Positions 33,526-52,267 of a stretch of DNA of 64,000 nt are shown piece after piece. The DNA lies in IMG/VR virus record IMGVR_UViG_3300042923_000569, positions 186,001-250,000 of that record; one strand, 5' to 3'. Every line of letters begins with the position of its first letter. Position 1 is the stretch's first letter. A program made the position numbers and the translations under genes. The notes beneath the pieces were generated by a model that saw only the letters and a program-made list of their open reading frames with translations, had not been told where the DNA came from and did no database searches.

Positions 33526-33605
33526 AATCTTATTGTCCTTATGAATAGGGAAAGCCACCAGCATTGTGCCAGTGGCTTAGGGATTTGTCAAGTACTATTG
33601 TACTT

Positions 33606-33902
33606 TTAATTATTGTCCTGCTGCAATTCATATTTGAATGATACGAGATCATCATTCAGATAGAATGTACTGTGACCAGGTTTAACATCAGCGTGACCAT
33701 CAACTGACTGTTTGTAGTTTGACTCCAGCCATTCCATCTGGTCTTGCTGGTCTTCAGGGTCGGTAATCCCGCACGCCATCAGCACCATCATTACCGCCAG
33801 TTGTCTAGGGTTTTCAGTACCAACCAGGTTGATTCTAATGTCCAGTACGTTGAAGCCAAAACGGTTTACAGAAACATTAACGAACGGGGTAGATGTAGCC
33901 AT
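33606..33902 (-). CDS. small early protein
   Basis: start moved to MATS after GGAG RBS; C-terminal NDDLVSFKY resembles 34004 protein. Confidence 0.65.
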   Translation of the reverse strand: MATSTPFVNVSVNRFGFNVLDIRINLVGTENPRQLAVMMVLMACGITDPEDQQDQMEWLESNYKQSVDGHADVKPGHSTFYLNDDLVSFKYELQQDNN

Positions 33903-34003
33903 GATGTAAATCTCCGGGGTAATGTGAAAAGCACTATTGCCTTCCGATGAATATATAATACTACTACCTATCCGAGTACGCAAGTACTTTCTTAAAGATT
34001 ATT

Positions 34004-34249
34004 CTAAGAAATGTATTCAATACTTACTACCATATCATTGCTAATATATCCTCTGCCGTTACCTGATACGCAGGCACGATAGTTAATCTCTGCTATTGCC
34101 TGATGGTCTTCGCGTTTAGTACTGTTAGTTGCAGCCATTGTAAGATCCACCAGCACTCTCATATGCCCAGGGGTCTTATCGCGGTTCAATGTGAATTCAG
34201 TAATATCAGTGTTGCCTAATGATACAGTTACTTTAATCTGATTTGACAT
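34004..34249 (-). CDS. small early protein
   Basis: 81-aa ORF; ends NDMVVSIEY. Confidence 0.65.
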   Translation of the reverse strand: MSNQIKVTVSLGNTDITEFTLNRDKTPGHMRVLVDLTMAATNSTKREDHQAIAEINYRACVSGNGRGYISNDMVVSIEYIS

Positions 34250-34305
34250 ATCCGTGCCCCTAGAGAAAGTGGGAAGTAGTCTTACTTCCCGATGTGATTA
34301 ATATA

Positions 34306-34575
34306 CTACTTAGCGATCTTTGCTGCAAGTACTTTCAAGAATGTTTTCAATTCTTTTTCGTTAGAAGTTTCTAACAGTACATTGCCATTAATTTCATTTA
34401 CTTTGAATGAACCGTTGGCATACACTCTTACAAAGTACATTGGTTCTGCTGCATCTTCTTCATCATCGATAGACCAGAACTCTACTTCAGTAGCTTCTTC
34501 ATCATCGATTGTTTCCATGAAGTCTGCAACCTGGTTAGCACCAAACAGTTTATTCAGCAGGGTGATAATTTTCAT
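34306..34575 (-). CDS. small acidic early protein
   Basis: own promoter TTGCGT-17-TATTAT and GGAG RBS. Confidence 0.7.
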   Translation of the reverse strand: MKIITLLNKLFGANQVADFMETIDDEEATEVEFWSIDDEEDAAEPMYFVRVYANGSFKVNEINGNVLLETSNEKELKTFLKVLAAKIAK

Positions 34576-34681
34576 TTCGTTTACTCCGTTGCGTTTCCGA
34601 TGTAGTAATAATAGTACTTCTGAATGTTTAACGCAAGCCTTTTTTAAATTAAAAGTATAATTTTTTATTTGCTGTAGGGTA

Positions 34682-34758
34682 TTGACAGGCCACCAGCACT
34701 AAGGCATAATTAACACACAGACGGCGAAACGTCTTTGACCCATAGGGTGCGGAGCTAT
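34682..34758 (+). ncRNA. promoter-hairpin-CCCATAGGGTGC unit 1 (Chi in promoter spacer)
   Basis: TTGACA-17-CATAAT; AGACG-GCGAAA-CGTCT; motif at 34739-34750; no ORF downstream. Confidence 0.55.
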
Positions 34759-34795
34759 ATAAAAAATAAAAGTACTATCCAATAGATAGATCTAT

Positions 34796-34865
34796 GCACC
34801 CTATGGGCTTAGTGGCTGTATCTGCCAATGAGATAAGTATAGCAAAAAGGGCTGACCGAAGTCAA
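34796..34865 (-). ncRNA. promoter-hairpin-CCCATAGGGTGC unit 2
   Basis: TTGACT-18-TATACT; TGGC-AGATACA-GCCA; motif at 34796-34807. Confidence 0.55.
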
Positions 34866-34873
34866 CCCCTTTT
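34844..34873 (-). terminator. UUCG terminator with an embedded -35 box
   Basis: GGGGTTGAC-TTCG-GTCAGCCC-TTTTT. Confidence 0.7.
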
Positions 34874-34889
34874 ATGTAATTCTTTTTGG

Positions 34890-35060
34890 TTATGCTGGCT
34901 GGTGATCGTGACGGCCTTTAGTGTAGGCGTCCTCTAATTCTTTACGTTGCCAGGTATCGAGTGAGTTAAACAAAAGGCGGTTATCATTATCAACCGGGCG
35001 GTTGTTGGTTCCTAATTCGTACCAACGTACTTTCAACATTTCTAAATCTACTTGAACCAT
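34890..35060 (-). CDS. 56-aa protein, paralogue of 35156..35365
   Basis: MVQVDLEMLKVRWY...LFNSL...ELEDAYTKG; below the ORF-track cutoff; AAGGA RBS. Confidence 0.65.
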   Translation of the reverse strand: MVQVDLEMLKVRWYELGTNNRPVDNDNRLLFNSLDTWQRKELEDAYTKGRHDHQPA

Positions 35061-35155
35061 TTTGTACTATCCTTATGGACTCATTGTAACGATTATATAA
35101 TGTGGGTTATACTAAGTCAACCCTATTGATATTATTTTTTATTATGACTGGAATT

Positions 35156-35365
35156 TTAGAATGTCTTTACTGTTGGTAGTACTGTTGATTGCATCCACGT
35201 TTCTGATTCATCGTTGACGCCGTACAGATAGGCTTTCTTTAGTTCAGCCTGGATGTGGGATGGAAGGGAATCGAATAGTTCTTTGTCTTTCCCAATGATT
35301 GGATTTCCTGCAACTGCCTGCTTGTACCAACGGATTTTTAAAGCTTCGACTTGACTGTTTTGCAT
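35156..35365 (-). CDS. small early protein
   Basis: LKIRWY...LFDSL...ELKKAYLYG. Confidence 0.7.
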   Translation of the reverse strand: MQNSQVEALKIRWYKQAVAGNPIIGKDKELFDSLPSHIQAELKKAYLYGVNDESETWMQSTVLPTVKTF

Positions 35366-35533
35366 TGTTGGCCTACACCTTTCTTTGTTTTGTTAAGAAC
35401 ATCTTATCGGATTCCTCTTAATCTGTCAACTACCTTGACGAATTTTATTTTATGGTCTACCGTCAGGCTTAGTTGAGATATAAAAAAAGAGGTTGACAAT
35501 TGCCAACCTCTGTGAATCTAAACGTGTAATAGG

Positions 35534-35878
35534 TTAAACGCTGTATGTTTCGATCTGATGCTGCTTGATCGCATTGCGTTGTACTGCATCCAATTTATTA
35601 AACGCTGGCGATCCGTATGCAGGTTCGATCTGAGTCCAGTTTTCCAGGTTGATAGGTTGCCCGTATGCGATAGCCTGAAGCATACGCATAATGCGACGGT
35701 TCTGGATATCACGGATTTCCCGATCCGTTTTATCTTCATCTGACAACAGAGAAGATTCCAGCTTGAAGCGGCGACCATTGTAATCTTGTCCAGCGATTAC
35801 ATATTCAGTACTGTTATTTTTACCCGGCGACGTCATTACAAACAAGTTCATCTTCATGTAATTATCCTCCATAAACAA
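35534..35878 (-). CDS. hypothetical early protein
   Basis: GGAGG RBS; consensus promoter upstream. Confidence 0.7.
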   Translation of the reverse strand: MFMEDNYMKMNLFVMTSPGKNNSTEYVIAGQDYNGRRFKLESSLLSDEDKTDREIRDIQNRRIMRMLQAIAYGQPINLENWTQIEPAYGSPAFNKLDAVQRNAIKQHQIETYSV

Positions 35879-35887
35879 TATAATATG

Positions 35888-35921
35888 ATTATAGGCTAAG
35901 GGCTGACGGTTGTCAACCCTT
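35888..35921 (-). promoter_or_regulatory. consensus sigma70 promoter fused to a hairpin
   Basis: TTGACA (35911-16)-17-TATAAT (35888-93); -35 lies in the stem AGGGTTGAC/GTCAGCCCT. Confidence 0.8.
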
Positions 35922-35937
35922 TTTTTATATTTTAAAC

Positions 35938-36840
35938 TTAAAAATCGAGAAGTTCTTCAGGTTCGGCGTTTTTCAGTGCCAGCCTCTGATCTACCAGGTT
36001 CATCGCCATTTGCCAGAGTGAGCTATTCAACACGATGTTTTTATCAATGTTGGTGATAGCACGGCTGGTGCGTTTGCGTCCTGTTTCTGGATTGAAGCCT
36101 GACTGCCCGCCTTGCATCAAATGCTGTTGAACCGTATTAAAAGTACTATACAGGGAATTATCGTATTTGTCAGTACTATTTAAGCCTTTATGTGATAAAA
36201 GTGAACGCGGCTGGAATACGGCGTTTGTGAAATCACCGTTAAGCGGCATACCTTCTTTTAACACATACGCGGCAATGGCGAATGAATCACGTTCTGAAAT
36301 GTTCAGATCAATCTGTTTCATTTCTTCTTTATAACGTTCAATATCATCAAAGTCTTTTACTACAGTGTAAACACCTTCGATAACATCATCCATAACGCCT
36401 TTGCCTTTCGTGCCATTACCTTTGTGATAGATTTTAGTATTGTGTGACATATCACCCATTACTAAACCATTAGCACAAACAAAGCGAAATTGTCCCGCCA
36501 TTAACTGGTAAGCACTTGTACCATCATTGGCATTCACCAAAATGATTTCGTTTGCTTCACCTTCAACCTTACCAGGCTGACGGAAACGGATCATATGTTT
36601 AGTATAATCACGTTTGGTAGTATCGCGTACTTTTGCCTGTATCGCGTACATAGGAAAATAGTTTTCTTGTGCCAGGCGATCAACAATGTCAATCGTTGCC
36701 ACTGGTGCAAATCTTGATGACCGGCTTTCGTGCCCTTCAACTGCGAAGATTGAAGGAACCACTTCTAACAGTTCAGTACGGTTCAATGGACGGTTATCTT
36801 TAAGGGCAAAGCCGTTGATTCCTTGATACATTTTGTTCAT
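35938..36840 (-). CDS. DUF932/DUF945 family protein
   Basis: PSIFA.E.HESRS.RF, KHMIRFR, EIILVNANDGTSAYQLMAG.FRFVCANGLV. Confidence 0.85.
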   Translation of the reverse strand: MNKMYQGINGFALKDNRPLNRTELLEVVPSIFAVEGHESRSSRFAPVATIDIVDRLAQENYFPMYAIQAKVRDTTKRDYTKHMIRFRQPGKVEGEANEIILVNANDGTSAYQLMAGQFRFVCANGLVMGDMSHNTKIYHKGNGTKGKGVMDDVIEGVYTVVKDFDDIERYKEEMKQIDLNISERDSFAIAAYVLKEGMPLNGDFTNAVFQPRSLLSHKGLNSTDKYDNSLYSTFNTVQQHLMQGGQSGFNPETGRKRTSRAITNIDKNIVLNSSLWQMAMNLVDQRLALKNAEPEELLDF

Positions 36841-36910
36841 GGGATAGCCTCTAAGCATTAAGTTTTTAAATTATAATATGCTAAACTTTAATTGTCTAGC
36901 ACATTTGAGA

Positions 36911-37108
36911 TTATTTTTTATTCAGTTCAATTGATAAAGCATCAAACTCTTTCTGTTGAGTACTGGTAAGATCCACCAGCCAACTTACAGAAACCTCTAC
37001 ACGATAGCCATAATCAATCGCATAGATTGTGTTATCCAGAATCAGAGGCTGAATCGAGGGAAACTTTTCAGCTACCGCTGTATTGATGTTCAGTACTTTG
37101 CACCCCAT
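36911..37108 (-). CDS. small early protein
   Basis: own promoter cassette upstream. Confidence 0.6.
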   Translation of the reverse strand: MGCKVLNINTAVAEKFPSIQPLILDNTIYAIDYGYRVEVSVSWLVDLTSTQQKEFDALSIELNKK

Positions 37109-37230
37109 TTCTTCAACCCCTGTTCTGTTTCGATGTAGTAATAATAGTACTTTTATAAGTTAAACGCAAGTACTTTTTAAATTAAAAGTATAATTATTTG
37201 AAATTATTTTATTAGTACTGCTACAATACA

Positions 37231-37300
37231 GCACCCCAATGGGTTAGTAGCTGTATCTGCCAATGAGATAAGTATAGCAAAAAGGGCTGACCGAAGTCAA
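37231..37300 (-). ncRNA. promoter-hairpin-motif unit 3 (variant CCCATTGGGGTGC)
   Basis: TTGACT-18-TATACT; near-copy of unit 2. Confidence 0.5.
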
Positions 37301-37323
37301 CCCCTTTATTAAGAATTTTGGAT

Positions 37324-37902
37324 TTAAATGTAAGTTACTGAATGGTCAGTTTCTTCGAAATCAATATCATTTGCAATGATTGATTCCTTGACATTTTCGT
37401 CAGAAATCAGGTCATAATAACATTTGTCCAGGTCGAAGTAGTACGCATCGCCAGCGGCTTTAATGTACGCGTCAATCTCTAATTGCAATTTGTCATAAAG
37501 AGATTGCTGTTTTGGTGAAAGGTCATTTTGCCAATCACCATCCATTTCCGCTGAAGTAGTATTTGAATGGTAGTAGCGACTTGAACCACGAACCACTTTA
37601 CAAGAAATATCGTTGCCCTTGATCAGTTCATGCAACAGGCGATAATGTGACCAGTGTTTTGCTGCACGTAAAAACTTTTCAATGTCAACGTTATCAGCGG
37701 TAAAACTTGCACCATCGCCCTGGCTGCAAAAGCCGGAGTACTGAGATTCTACATCTTCAAAGCCAACGGCTTTCAGTTTATCATGATGTTCAGCGGTTAC
37801 GTGTTCGCACCAACCATCATAATCAACGTTAATATCTCTGTGCTTGTCAAGTGCTTTGGCCTGTTGCTGTGCGTTCAGTTCGTTGAATTTCATGATGTTC
37901 AT
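37324..37902 (-). CDS. conserved phage/plasmid hypothetical protein
   Basis: YSGFCSQGDGASF and YYHSNT motifs. Confidence 0.75.
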   Translation of the reverse strand: MNIMKFNELNAQQQAKALDKHRDINVDYDGWCEHVTAEHHDKLKAVGFEDVESQYSGFCSQGDGASFTADNVDIEKFLRAAKHWSHYRLLHELIKGNDISCKVVRGSSRYYHSNTTSAEMDGDWQNDLSPKQQSLYDKLQLEIDAYIKAAGDAYYFDLDKCYYDLISDENVKESIIANDIDFEETDHSVTYI

Positions 37903-38100
37903 CTCAATTAAAATGGTTAGGAACTATTCCTTAACCTTGAATACATTATACATTACTACGTTAAACTTGCAAGTACTTTCTAGTAGATAATCAGGTAAAT
38001 TATGAAGATAATTACTATCAGTACTTTTACCATTTTTTCCATCTGCATGGCTACTATATGTGCTAGGCTCTTAGTACTGTATAGTACTACATAACGTTTC

Positions 38101-38325
38101 TTAGTGGACATACCTCATTGCCCCAAATGTAAGAGGGGTATTAACAACACTAACTTTTGTGATAATAAGGTTAGGTTCAATCCCGTTAAAGTAGCGAAGT
38201 GCGAACACTGTATCGCCCATTGAATAGTCTTCACGTAAACAAATAGGTTGCAGTACTTCAGACATTTGTCTATCTTCATCTGAAGGTTCTTCAAAAATAA
38301 TCTTCTTTAAAAAGTCTTCAATCAT
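38101..38325 (-). CDS. small early protein
   Basis: AAGGA RBS. Confidence 0.6.
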   Translation of the reverse strand: MIEDFLKKIIFEEPSDEDRQMSEVLQPICLREDYSMGDTVFALRYFNGIEPNLIITKVSVVNTPLTFGAMRYVH

Positions 38326-38435
38326 TACCGTATTCCTTTATGTTGTGGTATGAAACTAATCTTAGTACAACTTATTAGTACTTGCAAGAATTATTTTAGT
38401 ACAATATATAACCTATAACTAACAAATATATCTAT

Positions 38436-38504
38436 GCACCCTATGGGTTAGTAGCGGTATCTGCCAATGAGATAAGTATAGCAAAAGGGGCTAACCTAAG
38501 TCAA
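38436..38504 (-). ncRNA. promoter-hairpin-CCCATAGGGTGC unit 4
   Basis: TTGACT-18-TATACT; motif at 38436-38447. Confidence 0.5.
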
Positions 38505-38518
38505 CCCCTTGTTTAAAA

Positions 38519-38860
38519 TTATTTGCAAGTATAGATAACTTTAGCGGGAACATACTTACCAGTACTTTCATCCGGGATCGCAGTTTCCATAGTATATTTG
38601 TTATGGATGCGGTCTGAAATGATCCGGCCTGTATCGTTTCGGTAATCGTTACCGTCTTTCCAGAATTCCAGGGCATGACCGTGACTAGTCAAAGTAACTT
38701 TTGGTTGAGTAAGTTCAATCGTTGAACCTACAGACATAGGAACATTACTTGCGACTGTGTTCCCATTAACGATCAGTGTTTGAGTACTACAGGTTAGTAC
38801 TTCAGCTTGAACGGACAGTGACAGTACTGATAAGATACCAAAGGCGATTAACTTTTTCAT
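38519..38860 (-). CDS. secreted/periplasmic protein
   Basis: MKKLIAFGILSVLSLSVQA signal peptide; one Cys pair. Confidence 0.7.
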   Translation of the reverse strand: MKKLIAFGILSVLSLSVQAEVLTCSTQTLIVNGNTVASNVPMSVGSTIELTQPKVTLTSHGHALEFWKDGNDYRNDTGRIISDRIHNKYTMETAIPDESTGKYVPAKVIYTCK

Positions 38861-38929
38861 TTTATAATCCTGTTCAGTTGATATAGTTATTATAATAAAA
38901 AAGGCTGACAAACGTCAACCTCTTTTTGA

Positions 38930-39454
38930 TTATTCTATAGTACTATTTAAAATTGCGTTCTGTATGTATTCCATAATTTCATATTGGTCTACATTGTCTT
39001 TTGATGTAATTTCTTGCATTGCACGATATGCCGCGAAGACGCCAGCTTTAAATTTAGCTGGTGGCACTGCTTTGAGAGAATTCACTATACTAGATAAGTA
39101 ACCTGGATTATTAGCAAAGATTCTCGCTAAGTCCTGGGTTAGAGCTTGTACTTTTGTTCTACTGTTATGTACTGGATCTTTCGGAGCTTCTTCTGGTTCA
39201 GCGGTAGGAGTTGAACCCGGCATAAGCCCTAATGATTTAAAGTACTTTAACTTTTCTTCAGGCTTCATTTTTGACGTATCGATACCCTGAGAAGGCATTG
39301 TGTTTAATTTGCCTTGCATTCCTGTACCCTGATTACGTTTACCTTTGCTACCTTGTCCGGCGTCGTGACTGTTTGCACTGCGTTCACTGTTCGACCACTT
39401 ATCAGAGTGTCCTGAAAGTGTTGCACCGTTTTTACTTCTGAATGTTCCAGGCAT
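38930..39454 (-). CDS. hypothetical protein
   Basis: start moved to MPGTFRS. Confidence 0.65.
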   Translation of the reverse strand: MPGTFRSKNGATLSGHSDKWSNSERSANSHDAGQGSKGKRNQGTGMQGKLNTMPSQGIDTSKMKPEEKLKYFKSLGLMPGSTPTAEPEEAPKDPVHNSRTKVQALTQDLARIFANNPGYLSSIVNSLKAVPPAKFKAGVFAAYRAMQEITSKDNVDQYEIMEYIQNAILNSTIE

Positions 39455-39511
39455 AATAAAAAATCCCCAATATGTTATAAAGTTTATTATAATCATATTT
39501 AGGGATTATGT

Positions 39512-39754
39512 CTACCGCCGTTCAACGAATTTGTTATACTGTTCATGCGTCATTAGGTTTAGTACTTCATCCCGGATCACAATGCGTTCATTGTGTGATA
39601 CGTCAAGTACTTTAAACAATCCACAACCTAACTTCCTGGCATGAATAGATCCGCTTTTGTATCCGGTCACAACCTTGATCGCTTTGTCAAGTATCTTTGT
39701 TTGTACTTTAAAGTGCAATCGAAGTTGTATATCTTGAATCATTATCCGCTTCAT
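39512..39754 (-). CDS. ParE/RelE-fold-like small protein
   Basis: ARKL...LDV....RI......LMTHEQYNK resembles stand-alone ParE-like phage proteins. Confidence 0.4.
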   Translation of the reverse strand: MKRIMIQDIQLRLHFKVQTKILDKAIKVVTGYKSGSIHARKLGCGLFKVLDVSHNERIVIRDEVLNLMTHEQYNKFVERR

Positions 39755-39798
39755 AGATACACCTTCTAAGGGGCTTGTCAAGCCCCCTACGATTGATT

Positions 39799-45520: not shown

Positions 45521-45630
45521 TTTTCTTTCTCCGTCTCGTTTCGATATAAGTAAGTATACTCTCTTTTAGTTTATGTACAAGTACTTTTTAAATTAAAAGT
45601 ATAATTATATTTTTTAACGGGCACACTTCA

Positions 45631-45698
45631 GCACCCTAATGGGTTTGACCGTTTCGCCGGATTAAGATAAGTATACTAAAAGGGCTGACTTGCGTCAA
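45631..45698 (-). ncRNA. promoter-hairpin-motif unit 6 (variant CCCATTAGGGTGC)
   Basis: TTGACG-17-TATACT; CCG-GCGAAA-CGG. Confidence 0.5.
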
Positions 45699-45711
45699 CC
45701 CCTTTTTTCAA

Positions 45712-46011
45712 TTATTCTTCCATCTGTTGCTGATCATATACATCACCGCTAGCAATCCATAGCAGTTTAACATACAAATCAGTATCGGATTCATTTTCTA
45801 ATTCGTCATCATCCCATGCACCAGTTTCTAACAGTACTGATACAATCTTTTCGCGAGGTATCGCCTGCAATGTTTCCAGGAAGTAAGGAAGTTCTGCTTT
45901 AACAGATTCTTCACAGTCGCCTGCATGATGCATAGAATAGACCTGATCCAGATCTCTGAATGTAAACTCAATCTTACCACAAGATGACGTGTACCAGATT
46001 TGATCTTGCAT
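45712..46011 (-). CDS. small acidic early protein
   Basis: start moved to MQDQ; HAGDC, ETGAWDDDEL, LLWIA. Confidence 0.7.
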   Translation of the reverse strand: MQDQIWYTSSCGKIEFTFRDLDQVYSMHHAGDCEESVKAELPYFLETLQAIPREKIVSVLLETGAWDDDELENESDTDLYVKLLWIASGDVYDQQQMEE

Positions 46012-46094
46012 TTTGTTTTCTCTCAATTAAAAGTAAGTCAGTAACTACATTATAAAGTACTCGCAGTAATAAGCAAGTACTTTTGATAATGTTT

Positions 46095-46439
46095 TTACGA
46101 TTCGTCTGCCATACTATCCACCAGCTCATAAACCGGCTTAAGTAATGCATCAAACGCCGCATGATCACCGCTAGCAGTATTAGCGATTAAATCAATACCA
46201 TCATTGCCGTTATTATAGATAAGCAGTATAGAACCGATTTGATAAGGATCATCTTTCTTTAATACGCGGAGCCAGTCCAGTCCAGTACTGTTAAGGGCTT
46301 CTTTGATTGTGCTAACATCACTTGAACGGCGTAACACGAACTCCTCACCATCAAAAATGCTAACCTCATAGCCACCAGCAAAAACAGTACTCAAAATACA
46401 ATCAATGATTCTGTTTTCGTTTTCCAGGAGTGCAGCCAT
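46095..46439 (-). CDS. small early protein
   Basis: GYEVSIFDGEE...STGLD pattern. Confidence 0.7.
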   Translation of the reverse strand: MAALLENENRIIDCILSTVFAGGYEVSIFDGEEFVLRRSSDVSTIKEALNSTGLDWLRVLKKDDPYQIGSILLIYNNGNDGIDLIANTASGDHAAFDALLKPVYELVDSMADES

Positions 46440-46526
46440 AATATCCTCTCAATTAAAAGTAATTCGTTTGCAGTAACTACATTATAAAGTACTCGCTAGT
46501 TAATGCAAGTACTTTTGATAATGTTT

Positions 46527-46919
46527 TTACTTATTCAGATAACGATGAAAGTAATACATAGGGGAATGTTGGCGATCTTTCGCTGGCGGTACTTTGTACT
46601 TACAAAGCTCATAAACCTTTTGCATCATCTGGATATCAGACGCTGGCAATGCATAGTACTCAGTCTTTTTAACATCAATCGCGAAGTGTTGAAGTAGTAA
46701 AGCCCTGGCTGATTCAGCACTTAAGCCAGTGTGAAGAATAGCGGCTTTTTCTTCAAATGCTTTAAGCATTTGCTCGTTAGGCAAATTCTTACGTGGTAAC
46801 GCATTGATAGTTGCCTTATGGAATTTCTTACCATTGGCTAACAGCAATTCATGTACTGACATTTCTTTGCCATTGAACAAGAAACAAAAACCGTTTTCAT
46901 AACCTCTGACTTCTAACAT
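46527..46919 (-). CDS. small early protein
   Basis: AATTGAGAGG leader. Confidence 0.7.
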   Translation of the reverse strand: MLEVRGYENGFCFLFNGKEMSVHELLLANGKKFHKATINALPRKNLPNEQMLKAFEEKAAILHTGLSAESARALLLQHFAIDVKKTEYYALPASDIQMMQKVYELCKYKVPPAKDRQHSPMYYFHRYLNK

Positions 46920-46925
46920 AGTAAT

Positions 46926-47348
46926 CCTCTCAATTAAAATTAACTACTCAATAAGTTTATTATATAGTACTCGCTTGTTATTGCAAGTACTATCGAACTA
47001 CTTATTATGATTATCATTGTACAGGCGATCACATAATCGCCCATGATAAACCCGCCCATTCTTTAAACGTTTACCCAAAGGCATAAACCATTTAAGATGG
47101 AAACCAGTAAGAAAGATTATATCTTTCATTCGGAAACTTCTACAGTCCAGCCTTTATAGGCGTCGATGTAATTGATCCAGTCCTGGTCATTCCAACGGGC
47201 AGTAGTTACACCAGGAGCTTTAAACTTGTAATGTCCAGCTTTATATGCTTCCATCTTAGTCATGTATCACCTCTCAATTAAAATTAACTACTCAATAAGT
47301 TTATTATATAGTACTCGCTTGTTATTGCAAGTACTATCGAACTACTTA
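46926..47348. repeat. 79-bp perfect direct repeat of a promoter/RBS cassette (46926-47004 and 47270-47348)
   Basis: identical CCTCTCAATTAAAATT...AGTACTATCGAACTACTTA copies. Confidence 0.85.
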
Positions 47349-47747
47349 CAGATCTTTTTTACGCTTCACATCATTGCAGTTATCATAGTAAGGAATCGAT
47401 AACATATTACACAACGTGTACAGGGTACGCACACGAACATTGTCAAAATCAACAAAGTTCCCCTGTACTGCTTCGCGGAAAATAGTATAACCAGTGTATT
47501 CATACTGATTACCATGCCCAGGCATAAACTCATTGCGAACTACATCGATCCAGACCTGTTCACCTTCAGGCCGGTTATAGTGGTTAGCGTTTAACTCGTT
47601 TGCCTTTTCCACATCAACCAGGCAGGCGACATAAGTACTGTGATACGTTACGCCTAATGAATCAGTCCAGCGATTACCAGTAAGAGTAATGCCCTTGATA
47701 TCTTCCAGGGTTAAACGTGCGATTGTGATTCTAGTATCTTTGTCCAT
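47346..47747 (-). CDS. small early protein
   Basis: RW.D..G.TYHS...G.QYEYT...V.RKKDL pattern. Confidence 0.7.
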   Translation of the reverse strand: MDKDTRITIARLTLEDIKGITLTGNRWTDSLGVTYHSTYVACLVDVEKANELNANHYNRPEGEQVWIDVVRNEFMPGHGNQYEYTGYTIFREAVQGNFVDFDNVRVRTLYTLCNMLSIPYYDNCNDVKRKKDL

Positions 47748-47874
47748 CTGGTAAACCTCTCAGTTAAAATTGTGTATCTCGTTTCGATATAAAAGATTAT
47801 ACGCGATTCTAGTTTATGTGCAAGTACTTTTTAAAATGAATTTATAATTATATTTTTTTAATGGGTATAACTCT

Positions 47875-47942
47875 GTACCCTATGGGCTAAGCCATTTCTC
47901 TGGCGTATGAGTACTATAACAAAAGAGGCTAACTTTCGTCAA
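47875..47942 (-). ncRNA. promoter-hairpin-motif unit 7 (CCCATAGGGTAC)
   Basis: TTGACG-18-TATAGT; GCCA-GAGAAA-TGGC. Confidence 0.5.
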
Positions 47943-47959
47943 CCCCTTTTGATAATTAA

Positions 47960-48415
47960 TTATAGATACTTTTCAGGGATAGAATCTTGCTGAATGATTT
48001 GCTTTTCAGCCGCGAGTTCTGTTACAAACTCTTTCAGCTTTTTAAAGTACTTGTCATAACCCGCGATTACTTTATCAGCATCGCCTTTAATCTTGCGTAC
48101 TGCAATCTTGCGGCTTTCAGCGTACATATGCGGCTTTTCAGTAATGCAAGTTACCCAGGCACCGTCAAATTCAACTTCCAGATCCTGGAGTTCAACTTCT
48201 GAATCATTAAACTTGATTCCTTTGTGAATGTATGACCGGAAAGTTACTGGATCATTCATTCTGATTTTTGCGGAAACATCATTAATGTCGCCAATCAAAC
48301 CGCAGAAGATAGCAATACCGCCACCTAGTGCTAGTGGGCTGATTCGAATACTTCCATTAGGAAAGTACTTCAGAAATGATTCTGTTACTGCTGCCTGGAG
48401 TTCGTTGGCTTTCAT
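47960..48415 (-). CDS. hypothetical early protein
   Basis: start moved to MKANE. Confidence 0.7.
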   Translation of the reverse strand: MKANELQAAVTESFLKYFPNGSIRISPLALGGGIAIFCGLIGDINDVSAKIRMNDPVTFRSYIHKGIKFNDSEVELQDLEVEFDGAWVTCITEKPHMYAESRKIAVRKIKGDADKVIAGYDKYFKKLKEFVTELAAEKQIIQQDSIPEKYL

Positions 48416-48497
48416 GTTCTGTTCTCTCAATTAAAAAGTTACTATATAACTAATTATAAAGTACTCGCTAGTTAATGCAAGTACTTTTGATAATTAA

Positions 48498-48941
48498 TTA
48501 TTCAACAGTTCCCGCCAGGATCTCTCCTACGCGTACCATTTCATAACGATCAACGATTGATAAAGATAGCTTAGTATCTTTTTGGCGTACACTATACCAG
48601 GTATCACCTTCAAACACATAACGGGTAATGTTTTTGTTTGCGATAAGGAACATCAACCATGATTTAGTAGTTAGTGGCTCTGTGCCAGTTTCACCACGAT
48701 CACGCCCATAAGCTACAGTATAGCCAGGAACCTTTTTATTGAAGCTGTGACCTTCTGGACACTCGATAGATTTATCCAGTACTGACAGATCACCCAGGGC
48801 GATTAGTGCCTTTGCACGTTCTGCATCGTTGTAATGCTCAACTAACATTCTACCAGTGTGACCGATATAGCCATCATAGTTTACAGATGACCAGGTAACA
48901 TGTTCGCCGTCTTTGATTGCAATAACTGCTGGAGTACCCAT
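48498..48941 (-). CDS. conserved phage early protein
   Basis: MGT...YDGY..HTG..L..HY...LI.LGDLSVL...YGRDRGE. Confidence 0.75.
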   Translation of the reverse strand: MGTPAVIAIKDGEHVTWSSVNYDGYIGHTGRMLVEHYNDAERAKALIALGDLSVLDKSIECPEGHSFNKKVPGYTVAYGRDRGETGTEPLTTKSWLMFLIANKNITRYVFEGDTWYSVRQKDTKLSLSIVDRYEMVRVGEILAGTVE

Positions 48942-49097
48942 TTTTAAATCCTCTCAATTAAAAGTAACATCGTCTCGTTTCGATATAGGTAATTATATAG
49001 TACTGGTAATCGAAAGCAAGTACTTTTTAAAATAAAAGTATAATTAAGAATCAAAAATAAATTTGCATCTAAAGAAAAATGATGATACGATGTTTAT

Positions 49098-49192
49098 GCG
49101 GCGAAAATGTGAGGTTCGCCGCAAGTCCAACGAATGATAACGCATTGTATTACTTTATAGGATAGCTATGGGTTTGCTATCCTTTTTTTTTT
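49098..49192 (+). ncRNA. candidate ~95-nt small RNA
   Basis: TTGCAT-17-TACGAT (extended -10) promoter; 8-bp 5' hairpin; unpaired core; AGGATAGC/GCTATCCT terminator plus a long T run; no ORF. Confidence 0.6.
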
Positions 49193-49207
49193 ATTTTCGA
49201 AAAGGTA

Positions 49208-49282
49208 TTGACTCCACCAGCCAAATAACCGATAATCACATCAAGACGGCGAAACGTCCTTTCCCATAGGGTGCGGAGCTAT
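49208..49282 (+). ncRNA. promoter-hairpin-CCCATAGGGTGC unit 8 (Chi in spacer)
   Basis: TTGACT-17-GATAAT; GACG-GCGAAA-CGTC; motif at 49263-49274. Confidence 0.55.
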
Positions 49283-49319
49283 GTCTTTAAAGTACTAATT
49301 TTCTTACGGGTATTCCTCT

Positions 49320-49387
49320 GCACCCTATGGGCTACGCCTTTGTCTCGGCTTGTATGTATTATTGCATTTTTCGGGGATTGAAGTCAA
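49320..49387 (-). ncRNA. promoter-hairpin-CCCATAGGGTGC unit 9
   Basis: TTGACT-18-AATAAT; GCC-GAGACAAA-GGC; motif at 49320-49331. Confidence 0.5.
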
Positions 49388-49405
49388 CCCCCGATTTGTA
49401 AAGAT

Positions 49406-49762
49406 TTATTCTTCTTGCGTTACACATTCCAGGCGGTAAGTACTGAAATGTTTACGGAATAAATCGCAAGCCTGATCGCCGTTTTCCGCTTGCATTATAA
49501 TCGAACCTTCTCGATTATTTTTAATATCGAAATATGTTACTATCCAGCCACGCGTTTTGATTTCAGATAGTGGCAAGTGAATTGATCCACCGCTGGTTAA
49601 TTGACCTTCAGGATCTTTGTTGATTGCTTCCTGGTCGATAGTCAGTGAATAGTTTTCACCATCTACAACGTGGAACAATTCAACAATCGGATCGATGTTT
49701 CCACGTTTGTTTGCGATGCGTTCCAGTGTAGAAAGTACTCCGCGAAGTTCTGATAATCTCAT
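49406..49762 (-). CDS. small early protein
   Basis: 118-aa ORF. Confidence 0.7.
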   Translation of the reverse strand: MRLSELRGVLSTLERIANKRGNIDPIVELFHVVDGENYSLTIDQEAINKDPEGQLTSGGSIHLPLSEIKTRGWIVTYFDIKNNREGSIIMQAENGDQACDLFRKHFSTYRLECVTQEE

Positions 49763-49801
49763 TTAAAATTTACTCTCGTTTGTTGGTGTGTGGTAATAGT
49801 A

Positions 49802-50203
49802 CTATACTACTTCAGAAGTAGCAAGAATATTTTCAAAGTATTCGATTAAATCACAAAGTAACTTGTAGCGAAGTTTACCAGGTTCAGAATCCATTACGCA
49901 AAGGTTACGCTGATTCCAATGTAAGTTAACAGCCCGATTAACATCATTATCAGTTAATTGCATTTCAACCGGATAACCGCAGTGTAAACCCATTTCCACA
50001 AATACAGGCTGCAAGTATTCGTGATCGATCCCGGTAACTTCACTGTTAGGAGTGTGGGCGAATACGTGCCAGCAGATACCATGCTGTCTGGTTAGGTTGA
50101 ATGATTCACCGTTGATAGTGGTGTAAGTAACATCACGATCTAAACAGTCTTTCATTGCTGTTAGTACTTTCAGGACTAAAACTGCCTGCTCTGTACGTTT
50201 CAT
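49802..50203 (-). CDS. small early protein
   Basis: start moved to MKRTEQ; GIC...YPV...R..L pattern. Confidence 0.7.
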   Translation of the reverse strand: MKRTEQAVLVLKVLTAMKDCLDRDVTYTTINGESFNLTRQHGICWHVFAHTPNSEVTGIDHEYLQPVFVEMGLHCGYPVEMQLTDNDVNRAVNLHWNQRNLCVMDSEPGKLRYKLLCDLIEYFENILATSEVV

Positions 50204-50337
50204 TGTATTGCCTCTCAATTAAAATTTGTTTTGTTTCGATACAGGGAAGTTTACACTACTCGAAAGTTTATACAAGTACTTTTATAAAATATTTTTAAAC
50301 TCTCTGTAACGCATTCTAAGCGATTTAAAGTACTGCC

Positions 50338-50619
50338 TTACACCTTCAACGATTGAACGTTAAAAGCCCCGCTAATAGGCTTACACGCAAGATCTATAGC
50401 ATAGTTCGCTTTCTTGTGGATTATGTACATACACGAATCAAACTGATGATTATACGGCATATCATAAACCCGGCGTTGTACAAGTTCACCACTAACAACA
50501 AAGGCCAGGTAGCCGCTGAAGGTACAACTACGCGGGCCAGCACTGGTCATCGTTTTAGCAATACGGGTACGGGGATCAATCAGGGACGAAATAGGCTTAA
50601 GGTTAAGATTGTTATTCAT
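50338..50619 (-). CDS. small early protein
   Basis: start moved to MNNNL. Confidence 0.6.
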   Translation of the reverse strand: MNNNLNLKPISSLIDPRTRIAKTMTSAGPRSCTFSGYLAFVVSGELVQRRVYDMPYNHQFDSCMYIIHKKANYAIDLACKPISGAFNVQSLKV

Positions 50620-50766
50620 GGCGTTTAGTCTCAATTAAAAGGTAGAATCTAAAACGCTCTGTAATCAATTCTAAGCGTTTCTAATAGTACTTTAAGCGAA
50701 TGTATCACAGTACTATTAGAAATGCTTAGCGGGGCATATAGCCCCGCCATGCTGTATTACTTTGTA

Positions 50767-51411
50767 TTACGCGGCGGTATCTTCAGAGGCTACGCGGAAA
50801 GTTTCGATGAAAGTTTCGCGGTCCATGTTTTTAGAAGCTACCAGATCTTTGAGTTCCTGGCTCATGTTGCCTTTTTCCGGCATATCGTACTGTTTGCCAT
50901 CGACTTCAACAGTGACGCGGTTGTATGCGTTGTTGCTGCCGGTAAGTGACGCTTTGATCTTCTTACCTACACCAGCAACCGCCGCCTGAGCTACTGCCAG
51001 ATCCACGCCACCAGCTACCAGAAGTTTGAGCATTTTTTCACGTTCTTCTTTCGCTTTCTCTTCCGCTTCAGCGTTCAGACGTTCACGTTCTGCCTGAGCT
51101 TTAACGCGGGCTTCTTCGCGGGCCGCTTCAGCACGTGCGGCTTCTTCTTTCTGGTACTGTACAGCAGCCGGGATTGCTTTAGACGCTGCAACCAGAATTT
51201 TAGAAATCACGTCAGTGTCAGTTGTTTTATCAACAAAGTACTGAGCCAGGTTAGTCGCAACAGTGTTTACGTGATCAGCAATGTCTGCTTTGTGCTGAGC
51301 CAGTACTTCTTTACTGTGTGTCTTACCTTCTTCCGGTGCCGCCAGGGTAGGAGCCTGAGCGAACAGGATTGAATTCAGTGTTACTTTAGGAGCTTTAGAA
51401 GTGTTAGTCAT
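50767..51411 (-). CDS. Ala/Glu/Lys-rich coiled-coil protein with a small C-terminal domain
   Basis: 214 aa; codon use suggests high expression; first gene of the leftward early region. Confidence 0.8.
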   Translation of the reverse strand: MTNTSKAPKVTLNSILFAQAPTLAAPEEGKTHSKEVLAQHKADIADHVNTVATNLAQYFVDKTTDTDVISKILVAASKAIPAAVQYQKEEAARAEAAREEARVKAQAERERLNAEAEEKAKEEREKMLKLLVAGGVDLAVAQAAVAGVGKKIKASLTGSNNAYNRVTVEVDGKQYDMPEKGNMSQELKDLVASKNMDRETFIETFRVASEDTAA

Positions 51412-51670
51412 GATATTACCCTCGAATTTTTTAAGTTAATTTGTTTGGCCTGATTGTTTCGGCTTGATTAAAATTTAAACTACTTGTTTCTTTCAGTCAA
51501 CTACTATTTTCAACTTTCAAGAAACTTTTTTTCTTTCTATCGTCTGGAGCATTTCGCCCTTTCGATAACCAACATCTTACACCATCCTTTCTAACTAGCA
51601 AGTACTTTTTAAAAACTTTTTTTCGTTCTATCCAAAAGAGAGTTTCTATCTTCAGGACTTGCTAGCCAGG

Positions 51671-51683
51671 TTGTTAAAGAGCG
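51671..51683 (-). promoter_or_regulatory. boxA antitermination element
   Basis: CGCTCTTTAACAA on the minus strand, ~20 nt past a TTGCAG-16-TACTAT promoter. Confidence 0.65.
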
Positions 51684-51941
51684 GTGTTCCGTGTTGATGT
51701 GGTAATAGTACACTAACCATAAAACTCTGCAAGCACTTTCTTATAAAAACTTATAACTTTTTTCATTCGTCGTTTTTCTTCCTTTATACGCGTAAAGAAA
51801 CCCACAACACATAGGAAGCATTTACAGCCCTTTAAAGTACTAATCTAAGTGTTTACCAGGCGTAATCCTCCAGCCTCTTATAGTGCGTCCTATGCGTTCC
51901 TATATAGAAGAAACTATTTTCAATCTTTTTAAAGAAAATGC

Positions 51942-52012
51942 TTGCTTCTCTGATTCAGTACTGTATAATCTTTTATATCGAAGCGAAATTCGTTATCCCA
52001 TAGGGTGCGGAG
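51942..52012 (+). ncRNA. promoter-hairpin-CCCATAGGGTGC unit 10
   Basis: TTGCTT-16-TATAAT; CGAA-GCGAAA-TTCG; motif at 51997-52008. Confidence 0.55.
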
Positions 52013-52045
52013 ATCCGTCTATTGCTTTTTTACTTTTTCCTGGGT

Positions 52046-52121
52046 ATAGCTCCGCACCCTATGGGAAAGGCCATTTCGCTGGCTTGTACGTATTATTGCA
52101 TAATTCGATCAGTACTGTCAA
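52046..52121 (-). ncRNA. promoter-hairpin-CCCATAGGGTGC unit 11
   Basis: TTGACA-18-AATAAT; GCCA-GCGAAA-TGGC; motif at 52054-52065. Confidence 0.55.
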
Positions 52122-52267
52122 CAAAAAAGAAAATTAAAATAATGCTTGATCTGGCTGGTGGCTGTGATATTATTACCCCGTCAACACGAAAAGACAGCTA
52201 TTGATTCTGCCTGGTACTAACCAGACGCGGAAGGGGAACTAATGGAAAAACGCAATGAAAAAGCGTT

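Follow-up and report, generated by a model that had tools for sequence, protein, structure and literature searches.

Strong over-representation of the host Chi octamer has been described in lambdoid phages (2025, PMC12315714; Bobay et al. 2013), where the sites are clustered toward one end and almost all oriented for RecBCD entering there, at one Chi per 1.86 kb in LLS. These are temperate cos or pac phages of about 40-50 kb without recombination genes, and they carry Chi genome-wide. Phage P1, with 50 Chi (one per 1.9 kb), relies on host RecA and RecBCD to circularise its injected linear DNA, which carries a terminal repeat of about 5-10 kb; this redundancy is circularly permuted through headful packaging, and therefore Chi is needed everywhere. 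On enterobacterial chromosomes the same octamer acts as a self-mark turning RecBCD from nuclease to recombinase, with a bias that tracks replication genome-wide and a density of one Chi per 4.6 kb in E. coli K-12. The trans-acting proteins T4 gp2, lambda Gam and T7 gp5.9 meet the same threat to injected linear DNA, attack by RecBCD, and T4 has just 3 Chi in 169 kb. RecBCD inhibitors set off guard systems (retron Eco6, OLD, Gabija), whereas a cis signal would leave RecBCD uninhibited. The enterobacterial phage T5 has a long fixed direct terminal repeat (DTR, 10.2 kb) with 2 Chi per copy, both oriented for the right end, versus 4 in its 101 kb of unique sequence, but these numbers were too small for significance.

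The locus described here shares the clustering, the end-directed orientation and the self-mark logic of these systems, in a virulent jumbo myovirus of 358 kb that has its own UvsX/RecA-like recombinase. Unlike in lambdoid phages, Chi was confined to a predicted 20 kb repeat and the rest of the genome was just at the coding-bias level. The spacing in the repeat was one Chi per 1.66 kb, similar to that of LLS and about 2.8x the density of E. coli K-12. Linear injected DNA with a terminal repeat would be common to this phage and P1, but the repeat here is predicted to be fixed, and Chi was restricted to it. In contrast to the chromosomes, the bias tracked DNA ends and stopped at the repeat boundary. 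No T4 gp2-type end protector was detected in this genome or in its relatives CBB and 121Q, with T4 as positive control, and no lambda Gam homologue was detectable in this phage. The Chi-RecBCD principle is already known for lambdoid phages and P1; the searchable literature yielded no report of DTR-restricted Chi in a virulent, Rec-proficient jumbo phage.

The window, the whole 64,000-nt stretch analysed, covered positions 186001-250000 of a 357,873 bp contig, treated as the genome of a metagenome-assembled Rak2-like jumbo myovirus with GAP32 and CBB as nearest relatives. It contained 15 Chi octamers (GCTGGTGG) against 0.62 +/- 0.75 expected from dinucleotide shuffles, and 12 of the 15 lay between 33555 and 52161 (10 on the minus strand, 2 on the plus strand). 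All 12 sites listed by the initial annotation were verified in coordinates and strand; its count of only two in the remaining ~45 kb held in part, as three were present, at 18153, 21097 and the overlooked 4181 (minus). Across the whole 357.9 kb genome 33 Chi were counted. Of these, 12 fell within a 19.9 kb segment, at 0.60/kb, and the remaining 338 kb contained 21, at 0.062/kb, so that the segment was 9.7x denser (binomial P = 1e-7). When three sites in copies of one repeat were counted once, the clustering remained (10/31, P = 4e-6). Chi ranked top of 168 same-composition octamers in the segment (12 vs a mean of 0.31), Markov models of orders 1-4 predicted only 0.2-1.0 sites there, and the 70 kb beyond 52,161 were Chi-free. 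Equal Chi density elsewhere in the genome had been named as a result that would refute the initial reading; this was checked and did not refute it.

The cluster (33555-52161) coincided with a predicted long DTR at 33160-53058 (19,899 bp), present as one collapsed copy in the circularised metagenome assembly. The DTR was placed by three lines of evidence, namely gene collinearity with CBB, nucleotide alignment of both CBB boundaries, and contig depth. CBB has a 22.5 kb DTR defined by read depth; its annotated DTR genes mapped collinearly to window positions 53,011 down to 34,324, and its first post-DTR gene mapped to 32,589-32,035. Position 1 of both the CBB and BF records aligned to 53,058, and the CBB boundary 22,456|22,457 aligned to 33,160|33,159. 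Contigs inside the DTR were deeper than the flanking long contig by 1.75x, 1.52x and 1.82x in three metagenome runs, evidence which was at contig level and covered one boundary only. The prediction was thus a linear packaged DNA that carries the ~19.9 kb segment 33,160-53,058 as a repeat at each end, the exact termini being inferred from homology and from contig-level depth at the one boundary. A 127-nt end overlap of the contig was an assembly artefact. Within the DTR were early promoters of the sigma70 type and, on the minus strand, small early genes. Such promoters also concentrated in the same 20 kb of this genome, so that "DTR" and "early region" were inseparable here; in CBB alone, a non-DTR early region appeared to be at background Chi density (region coordinates estimated from ORF numbering).

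The enrichment was specific for the exact octamer. The ratio of Chi to its 24 one-mismatch variants together was 12:11 within the DTR and 21:249 in the rest of the genome (odds ratio 12.9, P = 3e-7), and in CBB it was 9:8 inside the empirically defined DTR and 20:249 outside (odds ratio 14, P = 5e-6). The DTR/outside density ratio of the variants was 0.75, versus 9.7 for Chi. All 12 CTGGTGG heptamers in the DTR were full Chi versus 21 of 61 outside, and the corresponding fractions in CBB were 9/9 and 20/64. Outside the DTR, Chi (21) was not commoner than its neighbours GCTGGTGA (25) and GGTGGTGG (22), and its genome-wide excess over shuffles was therefore a coding effect. The DTR sites could not be explained in this way, because 5 of the 12 were intergenic and the coding ones used two different reading frames (Leu-Val and Ala-Gly-Gly), including CTG. 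At 36% GC, CTG is expected to be a rare Leu codon; codon usage was unmeasured. The exact octamer is under selection, with about one site per 1.7 kb, inside the DTR but nowhere else.

The orientation of the sites followed the predicted ends. RecBCD that enters at the right end (mapping to 33,160) would meet the ten minus-strand Chi in their active orientation, and for the left end (mapping to 53,058) the two plus-strand sites, 52154 and 39057, are the active ones. The outermost sites were 395 bp (right) and 897 bp (left) from the predicted ends, each facing incoming RecBCD. Co-oriented Chi numbered 10:2 in the DTR versus 8:13 outside (Fisher P = 0.027), and 7:2 versus 9:11 in CBB, which showed that the bias was DTR-specific. 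The rule used by the initial annotation, that RecBCD reads Chi from its 3' side, agreed with the literature, and orientation unrelated to the DNA ends, which would have counted against its reading, was not observed. Its overall interpretation was supported, while RecBCD action, RecA-driven repeat recombination and reduced CRISPR spacer supply remained inference. The strong asymmetry, 10 sites for one end versus 2 for the other, had not been foreseen.

Five sites were intergenic or promoter-associated. The site at 33555-33562 (minus) was intergenic and directly followed the -10 of a minus-strand promoter (33591-33563). Those at 34690-34697, 43119-43126 and 49214-49221 (all minus, intergenic) lay in spacers of strong sigma70-like matches (TTGACA/T-17-C/GATAAT, 10-11/12) at 34682-34710, 43111-43139 and 49208-49236. 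These plus-strand promoters were antisense to the early genes and belonged to copies 1, 2 (truncated) and 3 of one repeated intergenic element; the position of the octamer with respect to the -35 differed by 2 nt in copy 3 from that in copies 1 and 2. The site at 52154-52161 (plus), facing the left end, occupied the 16-nt spacer of a weaker plus-strand promoter-like match (TTGATC 52146-52151, TATTAT 52168-52173), whose -35/-10 positions were conserved in GAP32 and BF, both without Chi there. The claim of four promoter-spacer sites thus held strongly for three and in a weaker match for 52154; that the three were paralogous copies on the antisense strand had not been foreseen. In the Leu-Val frame (G-CTG-GTG-G), minus-strand Chi lay on the sense strand of an 81-aa ORF (34147-34154), a 65-aa ORF (36973-36980) and the 114-aa ORF 46095-46439 (46118-46125). 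In the Ala-Gly-Gly frame (GCT-GGT-GG) they lay on the sense strand of an SPFH/Band_7 gene (42123-42130), as a second Chi in ORF 46095-46439 (46372-46379), and in the 214-aa ORF 50767-51411 (51008-51015). The CBB homologue of the SPFH/Band_7 gene also carried Chi, at a different position. The remaining site, 39057-39064 (plus), was antisense to a virion-structural-protein gene (38930-39496) and faced the left end; it alone of the 12 had a CBB counterpart at the homologous position (14624).

Each of the 12 Rak2-like jumbo genomes studied (this phage and CBB, GAP32, BF, 121Q, fHe-Yen9-04, XbC2, Kaldavass, Munch, RaK2, Sharanji and one IMG/VR genome) had a Chi cluster of 13-21 kb, with 6-13 Chi, the same orientation logic and mostly non-homologous positions. 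The clusters of 121Q and RaK2 were in regions homologous to the DTR of the window, and Sharanji has a PhageTerm DTR of 20,668 bp. Since just 1 of the 12 DTR Chi was positionally shared with CBB, the sites appeared to turn over under selection for density. BF and fHe-Yen9-04 had no Chi facing the left end, and Asteriusviruses carried a palindromic back-to-back Chi pair in a terminal non-coding region. The DTR was the most divergent part of the genome (<=4% covered in any single related record by megablast), was full of repeated promoter and hairpin cassettes, and had a gene order shuffled relative to 121Q and RaK2. The enterobacterial host proposed initially fitted all cultured relatives, and also the use of Chi by every enteric species tested.

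The phage encoded its own UvsX/RecA-like recombinase, which the initial annotation had not anticipated, and CBB has gp46/47 and UvsW homologues. These genes break the lambdoid rule that phages without a Rec module have high Chi. No glucosyl-hydroxymethylcytosine genes were found in CBB; this and the lack of gp2-type and Gam proteins counted in favour of the reading given next.

The reading we favour, with a probability of roughly 0.6, is that Chi in the DTR works in cis to attenuate RecBCD and load RecA, at places for which the second copy of the repeat gives homology; all RecBCD and RecA steps are inferred and untested. The blunt ends of injected DNA would be entry points for host RecBCD. Enzyme entering at the right end would meet ten correctly oriented Chi, and enzyme entering at the left end would meet 52154 and next 39057. 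At Chi, destructive degradation would end and RecA would be loaded on the 3' tail, which would find a homologous duplex in the other repeat copy of the same or a sister molecule; because the sites are inside the repeat, such a duplex would always be available. Nuclease attack would then be turned into circularisation, concatemer formation or recombination-primed replication at the cost of redundant sequence, and the repeat may be a sacrificial, self-repairing buffer acting in cis ahead of any phage protein synthesis. By analogy, lambdoid phages and P1 offer a precedent of abundant, terminally clustered, oriented Chi used with RecBCD. Against this reading stands the lack of experiments showing RecBCD access to the ends or activity of the sites. 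The protection is also lopsided, with left-facing sites absent from BF and fHe-Yen9-04, and three of the sites sit in copies of a single repeat. The inferred termini, the phage's own recombinase together with the CBB homologues, and the overlap of DTR and early region in this genome likewise count against it. An early RecBCD inhibitor of unknown identity could possibly make Chi irrelevant.

That the cluster is merely a side effect of base composition, codon usage or amplified repeats, with a slightly GC-richer, repeat-rich early region simply containing more Chi-like words, was all but excluded. The GC content (38.5% in the DTR vs 35.6% elsewhere), the three repeat-borne sites and the ordinary frequency of Chi outside the DTR spoke for it; however, the one-mismatch neighbours were not enriched (11 vs 249), the Markov expectations were far too low, the excess survived collapsing of the repeat copies, five sites were intergenic, and the other lineages examined showed the pattern too, at positions that are not homologous. 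Replication-linked orientation as on bacterial chromosomes, with Chi stopping RecBCD that, after fork breakage, heads back to an origin close to the repeat's left end, was considered unlikely. The cumulative GC skew minimum at ~50-52 kb was just left of the strand switch and of an iteron-like element (52,164-52,443), and RecBCD moving toward that point would find the co-oriented sites active; yet such a bias should run along the replichore, whereas both density and orientation bias stopped at the DTR boundary, with 8:13 outside and no Chi in the 70 kb beyond.

Recombination hotspots that help co-infecting relatives swap accessory early-gene cassettes, instead of protecting the ends, would agree with the divergence, cassettes and shuffled gene order of the DTR. 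This alternative was also unlikely, as it left unexplained the outward-facing outermost sites 0.4-0.9 kb from the predicted ends and the strict confinement to the repeat, and selection for evolvability, being second-order, is weak beside selection for the infecting genome to survive. Still less probable was starvation of CRISPR adaptation as the main benefit, with Chi halting RecBCD that makes spacer precursors from phage ends. RecBCD degradation, Chi and naive spacer acquisition are reported to be linked (Levy et al. 2015), and orientation and end proximity fit this idea as well as the main model. But it requires the same molecular events and would be an added benefit rather than an alternative, and active adaptation modules are not in all hosts, while the cluster is universal in the clade. 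Reading of the octamer by a non-RecBCD factor (a phage terminase, helicase-nuclease or transcription factor) was similarly improbable. It had no direct support beyond the four promoter-spacer sites and the Asteriusvirus pair, and against it the sites had no common flanking context, being coding in two frames, antisense or intergenic, and the word is identical to host Chi, which to our knowledge has no other reader.

The conserved non-coding element with iteron-like repeats (52164-52443, plus strand), 0.6-0.9 kb from the left end, is possibly an origin or packaging signal, its function being unknown. It had 82% column identity with GAP32 and BF, an exact 25-mer at CBB 657-681, and megablast matches at record positions ~630-890 in eight other relatives; in GAP32, whose record begins further upstream, it was at 3,418-3,691. 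Four tandem 20-nt units starting AGTACTGTTA (53076-53155, plus strand) were located directly outside the predicted left DTR boundary.

The signal octamer of host RecBCD, Chi (5'-GCTGGTGG-3'), was detected 15 times in the window by exact pattern search, compared with 0.62 ± 0.75 in dinucleotide-preserving shuffles, and 12 of the copies fell within 33555-52161. The initial annotation had listed these twelve sites as a dense, oriented cluster, and every coordinate and strand was correct; its count outside the cluster was one short, the minus-strand site at 4181 having been overlooked. The window corresponds to bases 186,001-250,000 of one contig of 357,873 bp. The whole contig contained 33 Chi, 12 of them in a predicted long direct terminal repeat (DTR, 33,160-53,058, 19.9 kb) and 21 in the other 338 kb, which corresponded to a 9.7-fold higher density in the DTR than in the rest of the genome (binomial P = 1e-7). 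No Chi was present in the 70 kb beyond 52,161.

The extent of the DTR was derived from comparison with relatives. By megablast and tblastn, the genome was placed among the Rak2-like jumbo myoviruses, with Cronobacter phage GAP32 and Pectobacterium phage CBB as the closest cultured relatives (about 76-78% identity in conserved genes). A terminal repeat of 22,456 bp is annotated in the CBB record, recognized by its authors from two-fold read depth, with the genome size confirmed by PFGE. Twenty-four CBB repeat genes were collinear, in strict order, with the window from 53,011 down to 34,324, and the first CBB gene past its repeat mapped to 32,589-32,035. Position 1 of the CBB and BF records aligned to the same nucleotide (53,058), and the inner boundary of CBB (22,456/22,457) corresponded to 33,160/33,159 inside a 472-nt alignment of 70.6% identity. 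In three independent public metagenome runs, contigs inside the DTR were deeper than the long flanking contig (359.5 vs 205, 407 vs 267 and 31.7 vs 17.4; ratios of 1.75x, 1.52x and 1.82x). This comparison used contig means only, at a single boundary (region 30,500-36,500) and without per-base resolution, and the flanking contig serving as depth reference was mostly unique sequence. Since gene order, both CBB boundary alignments and the higher contig depth agreed, 33,160-53,058 (19,899 bp) was inferred, from homology and from contig-mean depth at one boundary, to be the DTR in one collapsed copy. A contig break at 33,349 in run X15 was set aside as a boundary because it disagreed with the homology-derived one. 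The first and last 127 nt of the contig were identical, an exact overlap which represented the k-mer overlap of a circular assembly graph and not a biological repeat, and therefore the database flag "direct terminal repeats" did not describe the ~20 kb repeat itself.

Sigma70-type promoters were concentrated in the DTR region, with 15 strict gene-strand matches in two 10 kb bins, the other 10 kb bins holding 0-3. The DTR coded for small, mostly uncharacterised proteins, together with DUF932 and SPFH/Band_7 proteins. Given this concentration of promoters and small uncharacterised genes, the early region was equated with the DTR in this genome. A tRNA search of the window returned none.

The over-representation of Chi in the DTR resulted from selection on Chi itself, on which the shuffle, Markov, same-composition and one-mismatch controls agreed. 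Among 168 same-composition octamers in the DTR, Chi ranked first (12 vs a mean of 0.31), and in the whole genome it ranked only 2038th among octamers. When trained on DTR sequence, Markov models (orders 1-4) predicted 0.2-1.0 Chi; the maximal-order expectation was uninformative, because its 7-mers in the DTR were nearly all parts of Chi themselves. The set of 24 single-mismatch variants was the most telling of these controls. Pooled, the variants numbered 11 in the DTR and 249 in the rest of the genome, showing no DTR enrichment, and the distribution of Chi (12 and 21) tested against them gave an odds ratio of 12.9 (P = 3e-7). The same test on the empirically defined repeat of CBB gave Chi:variant counts of 9:8 vs 20:249 outside (odds ratio 14, P = 5e-6). 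The heptamer CTGGTGG was preceded by G in 12 of 12 cases in the DTR and in 9 of 9 in the CBB repeat, and outside the repeats in 21 of 61 (this genome) and 20 of 64 (CBB). Because Chi outside the DTR was not commoner than codon-friendly neighbour octamers, its modest genome-wide excess over shuffles was regarded as an ordinary coding effect.

Five of the 12 DTR sites were intergenic, six lay on the sense strand of ORFs and one was antisense. The six sense-strand sites used two frames, three encoding Leu-Val-Asp and three Ala-Gly-Gly. Three intergenic sites (34690, 43119 and 49214) sat in copies of one repeated element, and the DTR excess was still supported when these were counted once (P = 4e-6). 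Paralogy was considered for the genes carrying the coding sites 34147 and 36973 and rejected, as no protein similarity was found; seven identical bases followed Chi in the two. The Pseudomonas, Lactococcus and Haemophilus-variant Chi motifs were all absent from the DTR, and the short motifs of B. subtilis and S. aureus were about 3-6x denser there, in small counts (32 vs 165; 4 vs 12).

According to the literature, RecBCD reads 5'-GCTGGTGG-3' on approach from its 3' side. At the predicted right end (33,160), where the DNA lies on the higher-coordinate side, ten minus-strand Chi were in the active orientation for an entering enzyme, the first being reached after 395 bp (33555). The predicted left end (53,058) was faced by two plus-strand Chi, at 52154 after 897 bp and then at 39057. 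The orientation of Chi fitted enzyme entry at the ends, with 10 vs 2 sites, a result only as firm as the termini, which homology and depth were used to infer. The bias was 10:2 inside the DTR vs 8:13 outside (Fisher P = 0.027), and in CBB 7:2 in the repeat vs 9:11 outside. It was not a coding-strand artefact, because four of the five intergenic sites kept the majority orientation. The earlier proposal that the sites are oriented against enzyme entering from the genome ends held on the predicted ends, with the bias confined to the repeat; the action of RecBCD itself is inferred.

Four Chi had also been assigned from sequence alone to promoter spacers, of which three lay in strong plus-strand matches (34690, 43119 and 49214) and 52154 in a weaker one. 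The strong matches in the consensus scan were TTGACA-17-CATAAT at 34682-34710 and 43111-43139 and TTGACT-17-GATAAT at 49208-49236, each with the complement of Chi in the spacer. These plus-strand promoters, starting at 34682, 43111 and 49208, ran antisense to the early genes, and each opened a copy of the repeated element; in the third copy (49214) the octamer had moved by 2 nt relative to the -35 box and was still intact. At the promoter-like site of 52154, the -35 and -10 boxes were kept in GAP32 and BF, both without Chi there, and CBB carried a sense-strand Chi in its own promoter spacer at 21020. It was inferred that Chi in promoter spacers makes use of sequence-unconstrained positions in gene-dense DNA, without a functional link to transcription.

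The repeated element began with a plus-strand sigma70-like promoter, followed by a short hairpin (AGACGGCGAAACGTCT) and then by a 16-bp inverted repeat (CCCATAGGGTGCGGAG and its complement), and ended with a facing minus-strand promoter, the two promoters being convergent. Copies were located at ~34680-34890, 43110-43240 (truncated), 49205-49400 and 51940-52125, and partial copies at 37235-37319, 38439-38523 and 47855-47943. The GGGTGCGGAG words of the element were DTR-specific in CBB too. A search of Rfam, run on the window at the gathering threshold and on 33-53.5 kb at E <= 0.1, returned nothing relevant for the hairpin elements or for a conserved terminal element near the left end. The element might serve as a cassette for an antisense or small RNA, or be a mobile module of promoter and stem-loop.

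A Chi cluster was present in the repeat-syntenic region of every Rak2-like genome examined. Counted as sites co-oriented with transcription plus opposite sites, the clusters contained 7+2 Chi in CBB (22.5 kb), GAP32 and XbC2 (first 16.4 kb of OP292654.1), 6+0 in BF and fHe-Yen9-04, 8+1 in Kaldavass, 11+2 in Munch, 9+1 in 121Q (18 kb), 8+1 in RaK2 (13.7 kb), 9+1 in Sharanji (18.7 kb) and 10+1 in an IMG/VR genome (19 kb); the background density in all these genomes was about 0.03-0.08 per kb. The DTR of Sharanji measures 20,668 bp by PhageTerm analysis. In 121Q and RaK2 the clusters started right after a non-coding gap of 1.5-2 kb, among loosely spaced small genes, several of which were homologous to repeat genes of the window. 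Of the 12 sites of the cluster, 39057 alone had a CBB site at the homologous position, and the SPFH gene carried Chi in both phages at differing positions. Because positions were mostly unshared with CBB, Chi density appeared to be kept through turnover, as for selection on a signal and not inheritance. The relatives were not all phylogenetically independent, as CBB, GAP32 and XbC2 all belong to Mimasvirus. Most GAP32 Chi stood at a near-constant offset (~2.0-2.7 kb) from CBB sites; most Chi of these two phages are likely to be identical sites, and XbC2 may share some of them.

Two further arrangements were observed in the relatives. A back-to-back palindromic Chi pair, CCACCAGC-4 nt-GCTGGTGG, occurred in 121Q (record 136034-136053, CCACCAGC-TTGT-GCTGGTGG, in the terminal non-coding gap), Sharanji (35841-35860) and Munch (484-503, ~0.5 kb from the record start). 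Such a pair would act in both directions and might form a hairpin. Groups of 2-4 opposite-orientation Chi were located a few kb upstream of the left boundary of the repeat in four relatives (BF, 348.5-351.1 kb; 121Q, 124.5-125.0 kb; Munch, 342.1-342.4 kb; CBB, 353.2-353.7 kb), with no counterpart in this window. The group of 121Q consisted of three Chi in gene 243, 255-258 bp apart, among divergently transcribed RCC1-like genes, a spacing more suggestive of a motif repeated in the protein than of a signal. Extension of the idea to Xanthomonas phage XacN1 (66 kb DTR) gave no clear signal: E. coli Chi was only 2.7x denser in its DTR, in mixed orientation, and an unbiased scan of DTR-enriched octamers returned promoter and tRNA words without a convincing Chi-like candidate.

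The assembly and near-identical sequences originated from soil, plant, phyllosphere, insect-gut and food metagenomes, and the cultured relatives all infect Enterobacterales except XbC2, labelled Xanthomonas. For this metagenome assembly the host is inferred to be an enterobacterium, probably plant- or soil-associated; the enterobacterial host claimed in the initial annotation was supported as a reasonable inference from the cultured relatives. XbC2 (OP292654.1), with Xanthomonas vesicatoria as recorded host, is classed in Mimasvirus and carried an E. coli-type cluster of 9 sites; Xanthomonas RecBCD may read the same octamer, or the usual host may be an enterobacterium.

RecBCD is the first nuclease met by a linear phage genome, and the textbook phage answers to it are the proteins gp2, Gam and gp5.9. 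It has been reported that RecBCD loads on blunt duplex ends, degrades to Chi, then spares the 3' strand and loads RecA. Our main reading, held at a probability of roughly 0.6 and untested, is that the DTR Chi serve as a cis-acting RecBCD attenuator and RecA loader. The injected linear genome would show two ends before any phage protein exists. Chi in the repeat would redirect the nuclease, so that its attack ended in a RecA filament formed on repeat DNA, for which the other repeat copy would be an assured source of homology even in an infection at a multiplicity of one. The genome would then circularise, form concatemers or enter recombination-primed replication, and the sequence degraded distal to Chi would be redundant. 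We propose that Chi are confined to the repeat because Chi in unique DNA would lack a partner in single infection, and that the outermost sites lie near both boundaries because such placement would maximise the overlap kept by two resected repeats. If about one-third of RecBCD-Chi encounters are productive, as in published estimates, ten sites would halt ~99% of enzymes before they left the repeat, and two sites only ~60%. The 10 vs 2 asymmetry is the main feature left unexplained by this mechanism. The ten-site end may be exposed first or longest, for example as the last-packaged, first-ejected end, and the two-site end may enter once an early inhibitor is present, or the particle may retain it. 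No general rule could be drawn, since the two sites of T5 face its last-entering end.

No homologue of T4 gp2 was found in this genome, CBB or 121Q with a profile that finds T4's own gene (E = 1.6e-82), and lambda-type Gam was not found in this genome, in which most early ORFs are without known function. As CBB has no genes for glucosylation of hydroxymethylcytosine, the DNA is expected to be an ordinary substrate for RecBCD. A RecA/UvsX-like ORF was located at genome positions 35,858-36,619, and CBB encodes UvsX, gp46/47, UvsW and EndoVII homologues; if the phage recombinases act later, as inferred from T4, processing by the host would count only at the outset. According to a published review, retron Eco6, OLD and Gabija are activated when RecBCD is inhibited with Gam or gp5.9, and a cis signal leaving RecBCD active might evade these systems, which is speculation. 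A bolder reading, to which we give rather less credence than to its alternatives combined, is that the long fixed DTRs of enterobacterial jumbo phages are Chi-armed sacrificial buffers, protein-free and immediate, through which host RecBCD-RecA would circularise or concatemerise a 380 kb genome in a single infection.

Other explanations of the cluster were weighed against the attenuator reading. An artefact of composition or repeats would make Chi dense without any selection on it; it is all but ruled out by the one-mismatch neighbour test and by the recurrence of the cluster across the clade. A chromosome-like, replication-linked Chi bias is improbable, as both density and orientation bias end at the repeat boundary. 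A reader of the octamer other than RecBCD is very improbable and is without support. Promotion of cassette exchange and a lower supply of CRISPR spacers, the latter also suggested in the initial annotation, are compatible as side benefits of the attenuator, but neither alone explains outward-facing terminal sites.

Carriage of host Chi by phages to exploit RecBCD is already known from P1, from prophages and from lambdoid phages of the LLS class. Lambdoid phages that lack recombination genes have been reported to gather oriented, end-clustered Chi and to grow better with RecBCD, and recombination of the P1 terminal redundancy requires host RecA and RecBCD. The abundant, terminally clustered, mainly one-orientation Chi of the LLS class was met here locally in the DTR but not genome-wide. 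LLS phages lack a recombination module, whereas this phage has a UvsX/RecA-like gene; since this feature was tested and not met, the phage was not filed in that class. T4 contained 3 Chi in 169 kb, without a cluster, and T5 (NC_005859) contained 2 Chi per 10.2 kb repeat copy (8127 and 8689; 119658 and 120220, both oriented to act on enzyme entering at the right end) vs 4 in the 101 kb unique part, too few to interpret. The difference here lies in the architecture, Chi being restricted to a fixed terminal repeat of ~20 kb in several genera of a virulent myovirus clade (358 kb) that encodes a recombinase of its own. No report connecting Chi or RecBCD to jumbo phages, to direct terminal repeats or to Asteriusvirus was found in the open full-text literature searched (subscription journals being outside its scope), and neither Chi nor RecBCD is mentioned in the CBB paper.

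A virulent jumbo clade appears to write a host "self" signal into the sole part of its genome with a spare copy. If this is true, long terminal repeats would be useful beyond early gene dosage, Chi exploitation would reach beyond small temperate phages without recombinases, and RecBCD would be countered without detection by guard systems. On the bolder reading, the 10 vs 2 asymmetry would show which end is the first into the cell, and oriented octamers restricted to the DTR could provide a sequence-only host predictor for uncultivated jumbo phages. The reading is directly testable, because the same-cluster relatives Sharanji and 121Q grow on E. coli K-12, for which rec mutants and Chi-blind recC alleles are available.

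Near the predicted left end, the segment 52164-52443 was conserved across genera better than any other non-coding DNA (82% column identity to GAP32 and BF). It lay 0.6-0.9 kb from that end, contained the iteron-like repeats GTCTAAACGTCTAGA and CCATCTA, and was preceded by a conserved promoter directed outward to the left end; one hairpin showed a compensatory change, but the three sequences compared are too few for a verdict. This segment is a possible origin or packaging signal. The commonest hexamer of the whole genome was AGTACT, with 991 copies (8.2x the base-composition expectation, ~1 per 360 bp) in coding and non-coding DNA alike. It was part of the early-promoter word AAAGTACTTGC and occurred also within a 4x tandem 20-mer at 53076-53155, just outside the predicted left repeat boundary, and the DTR of CBB was enriched for AAGTACTT words too.
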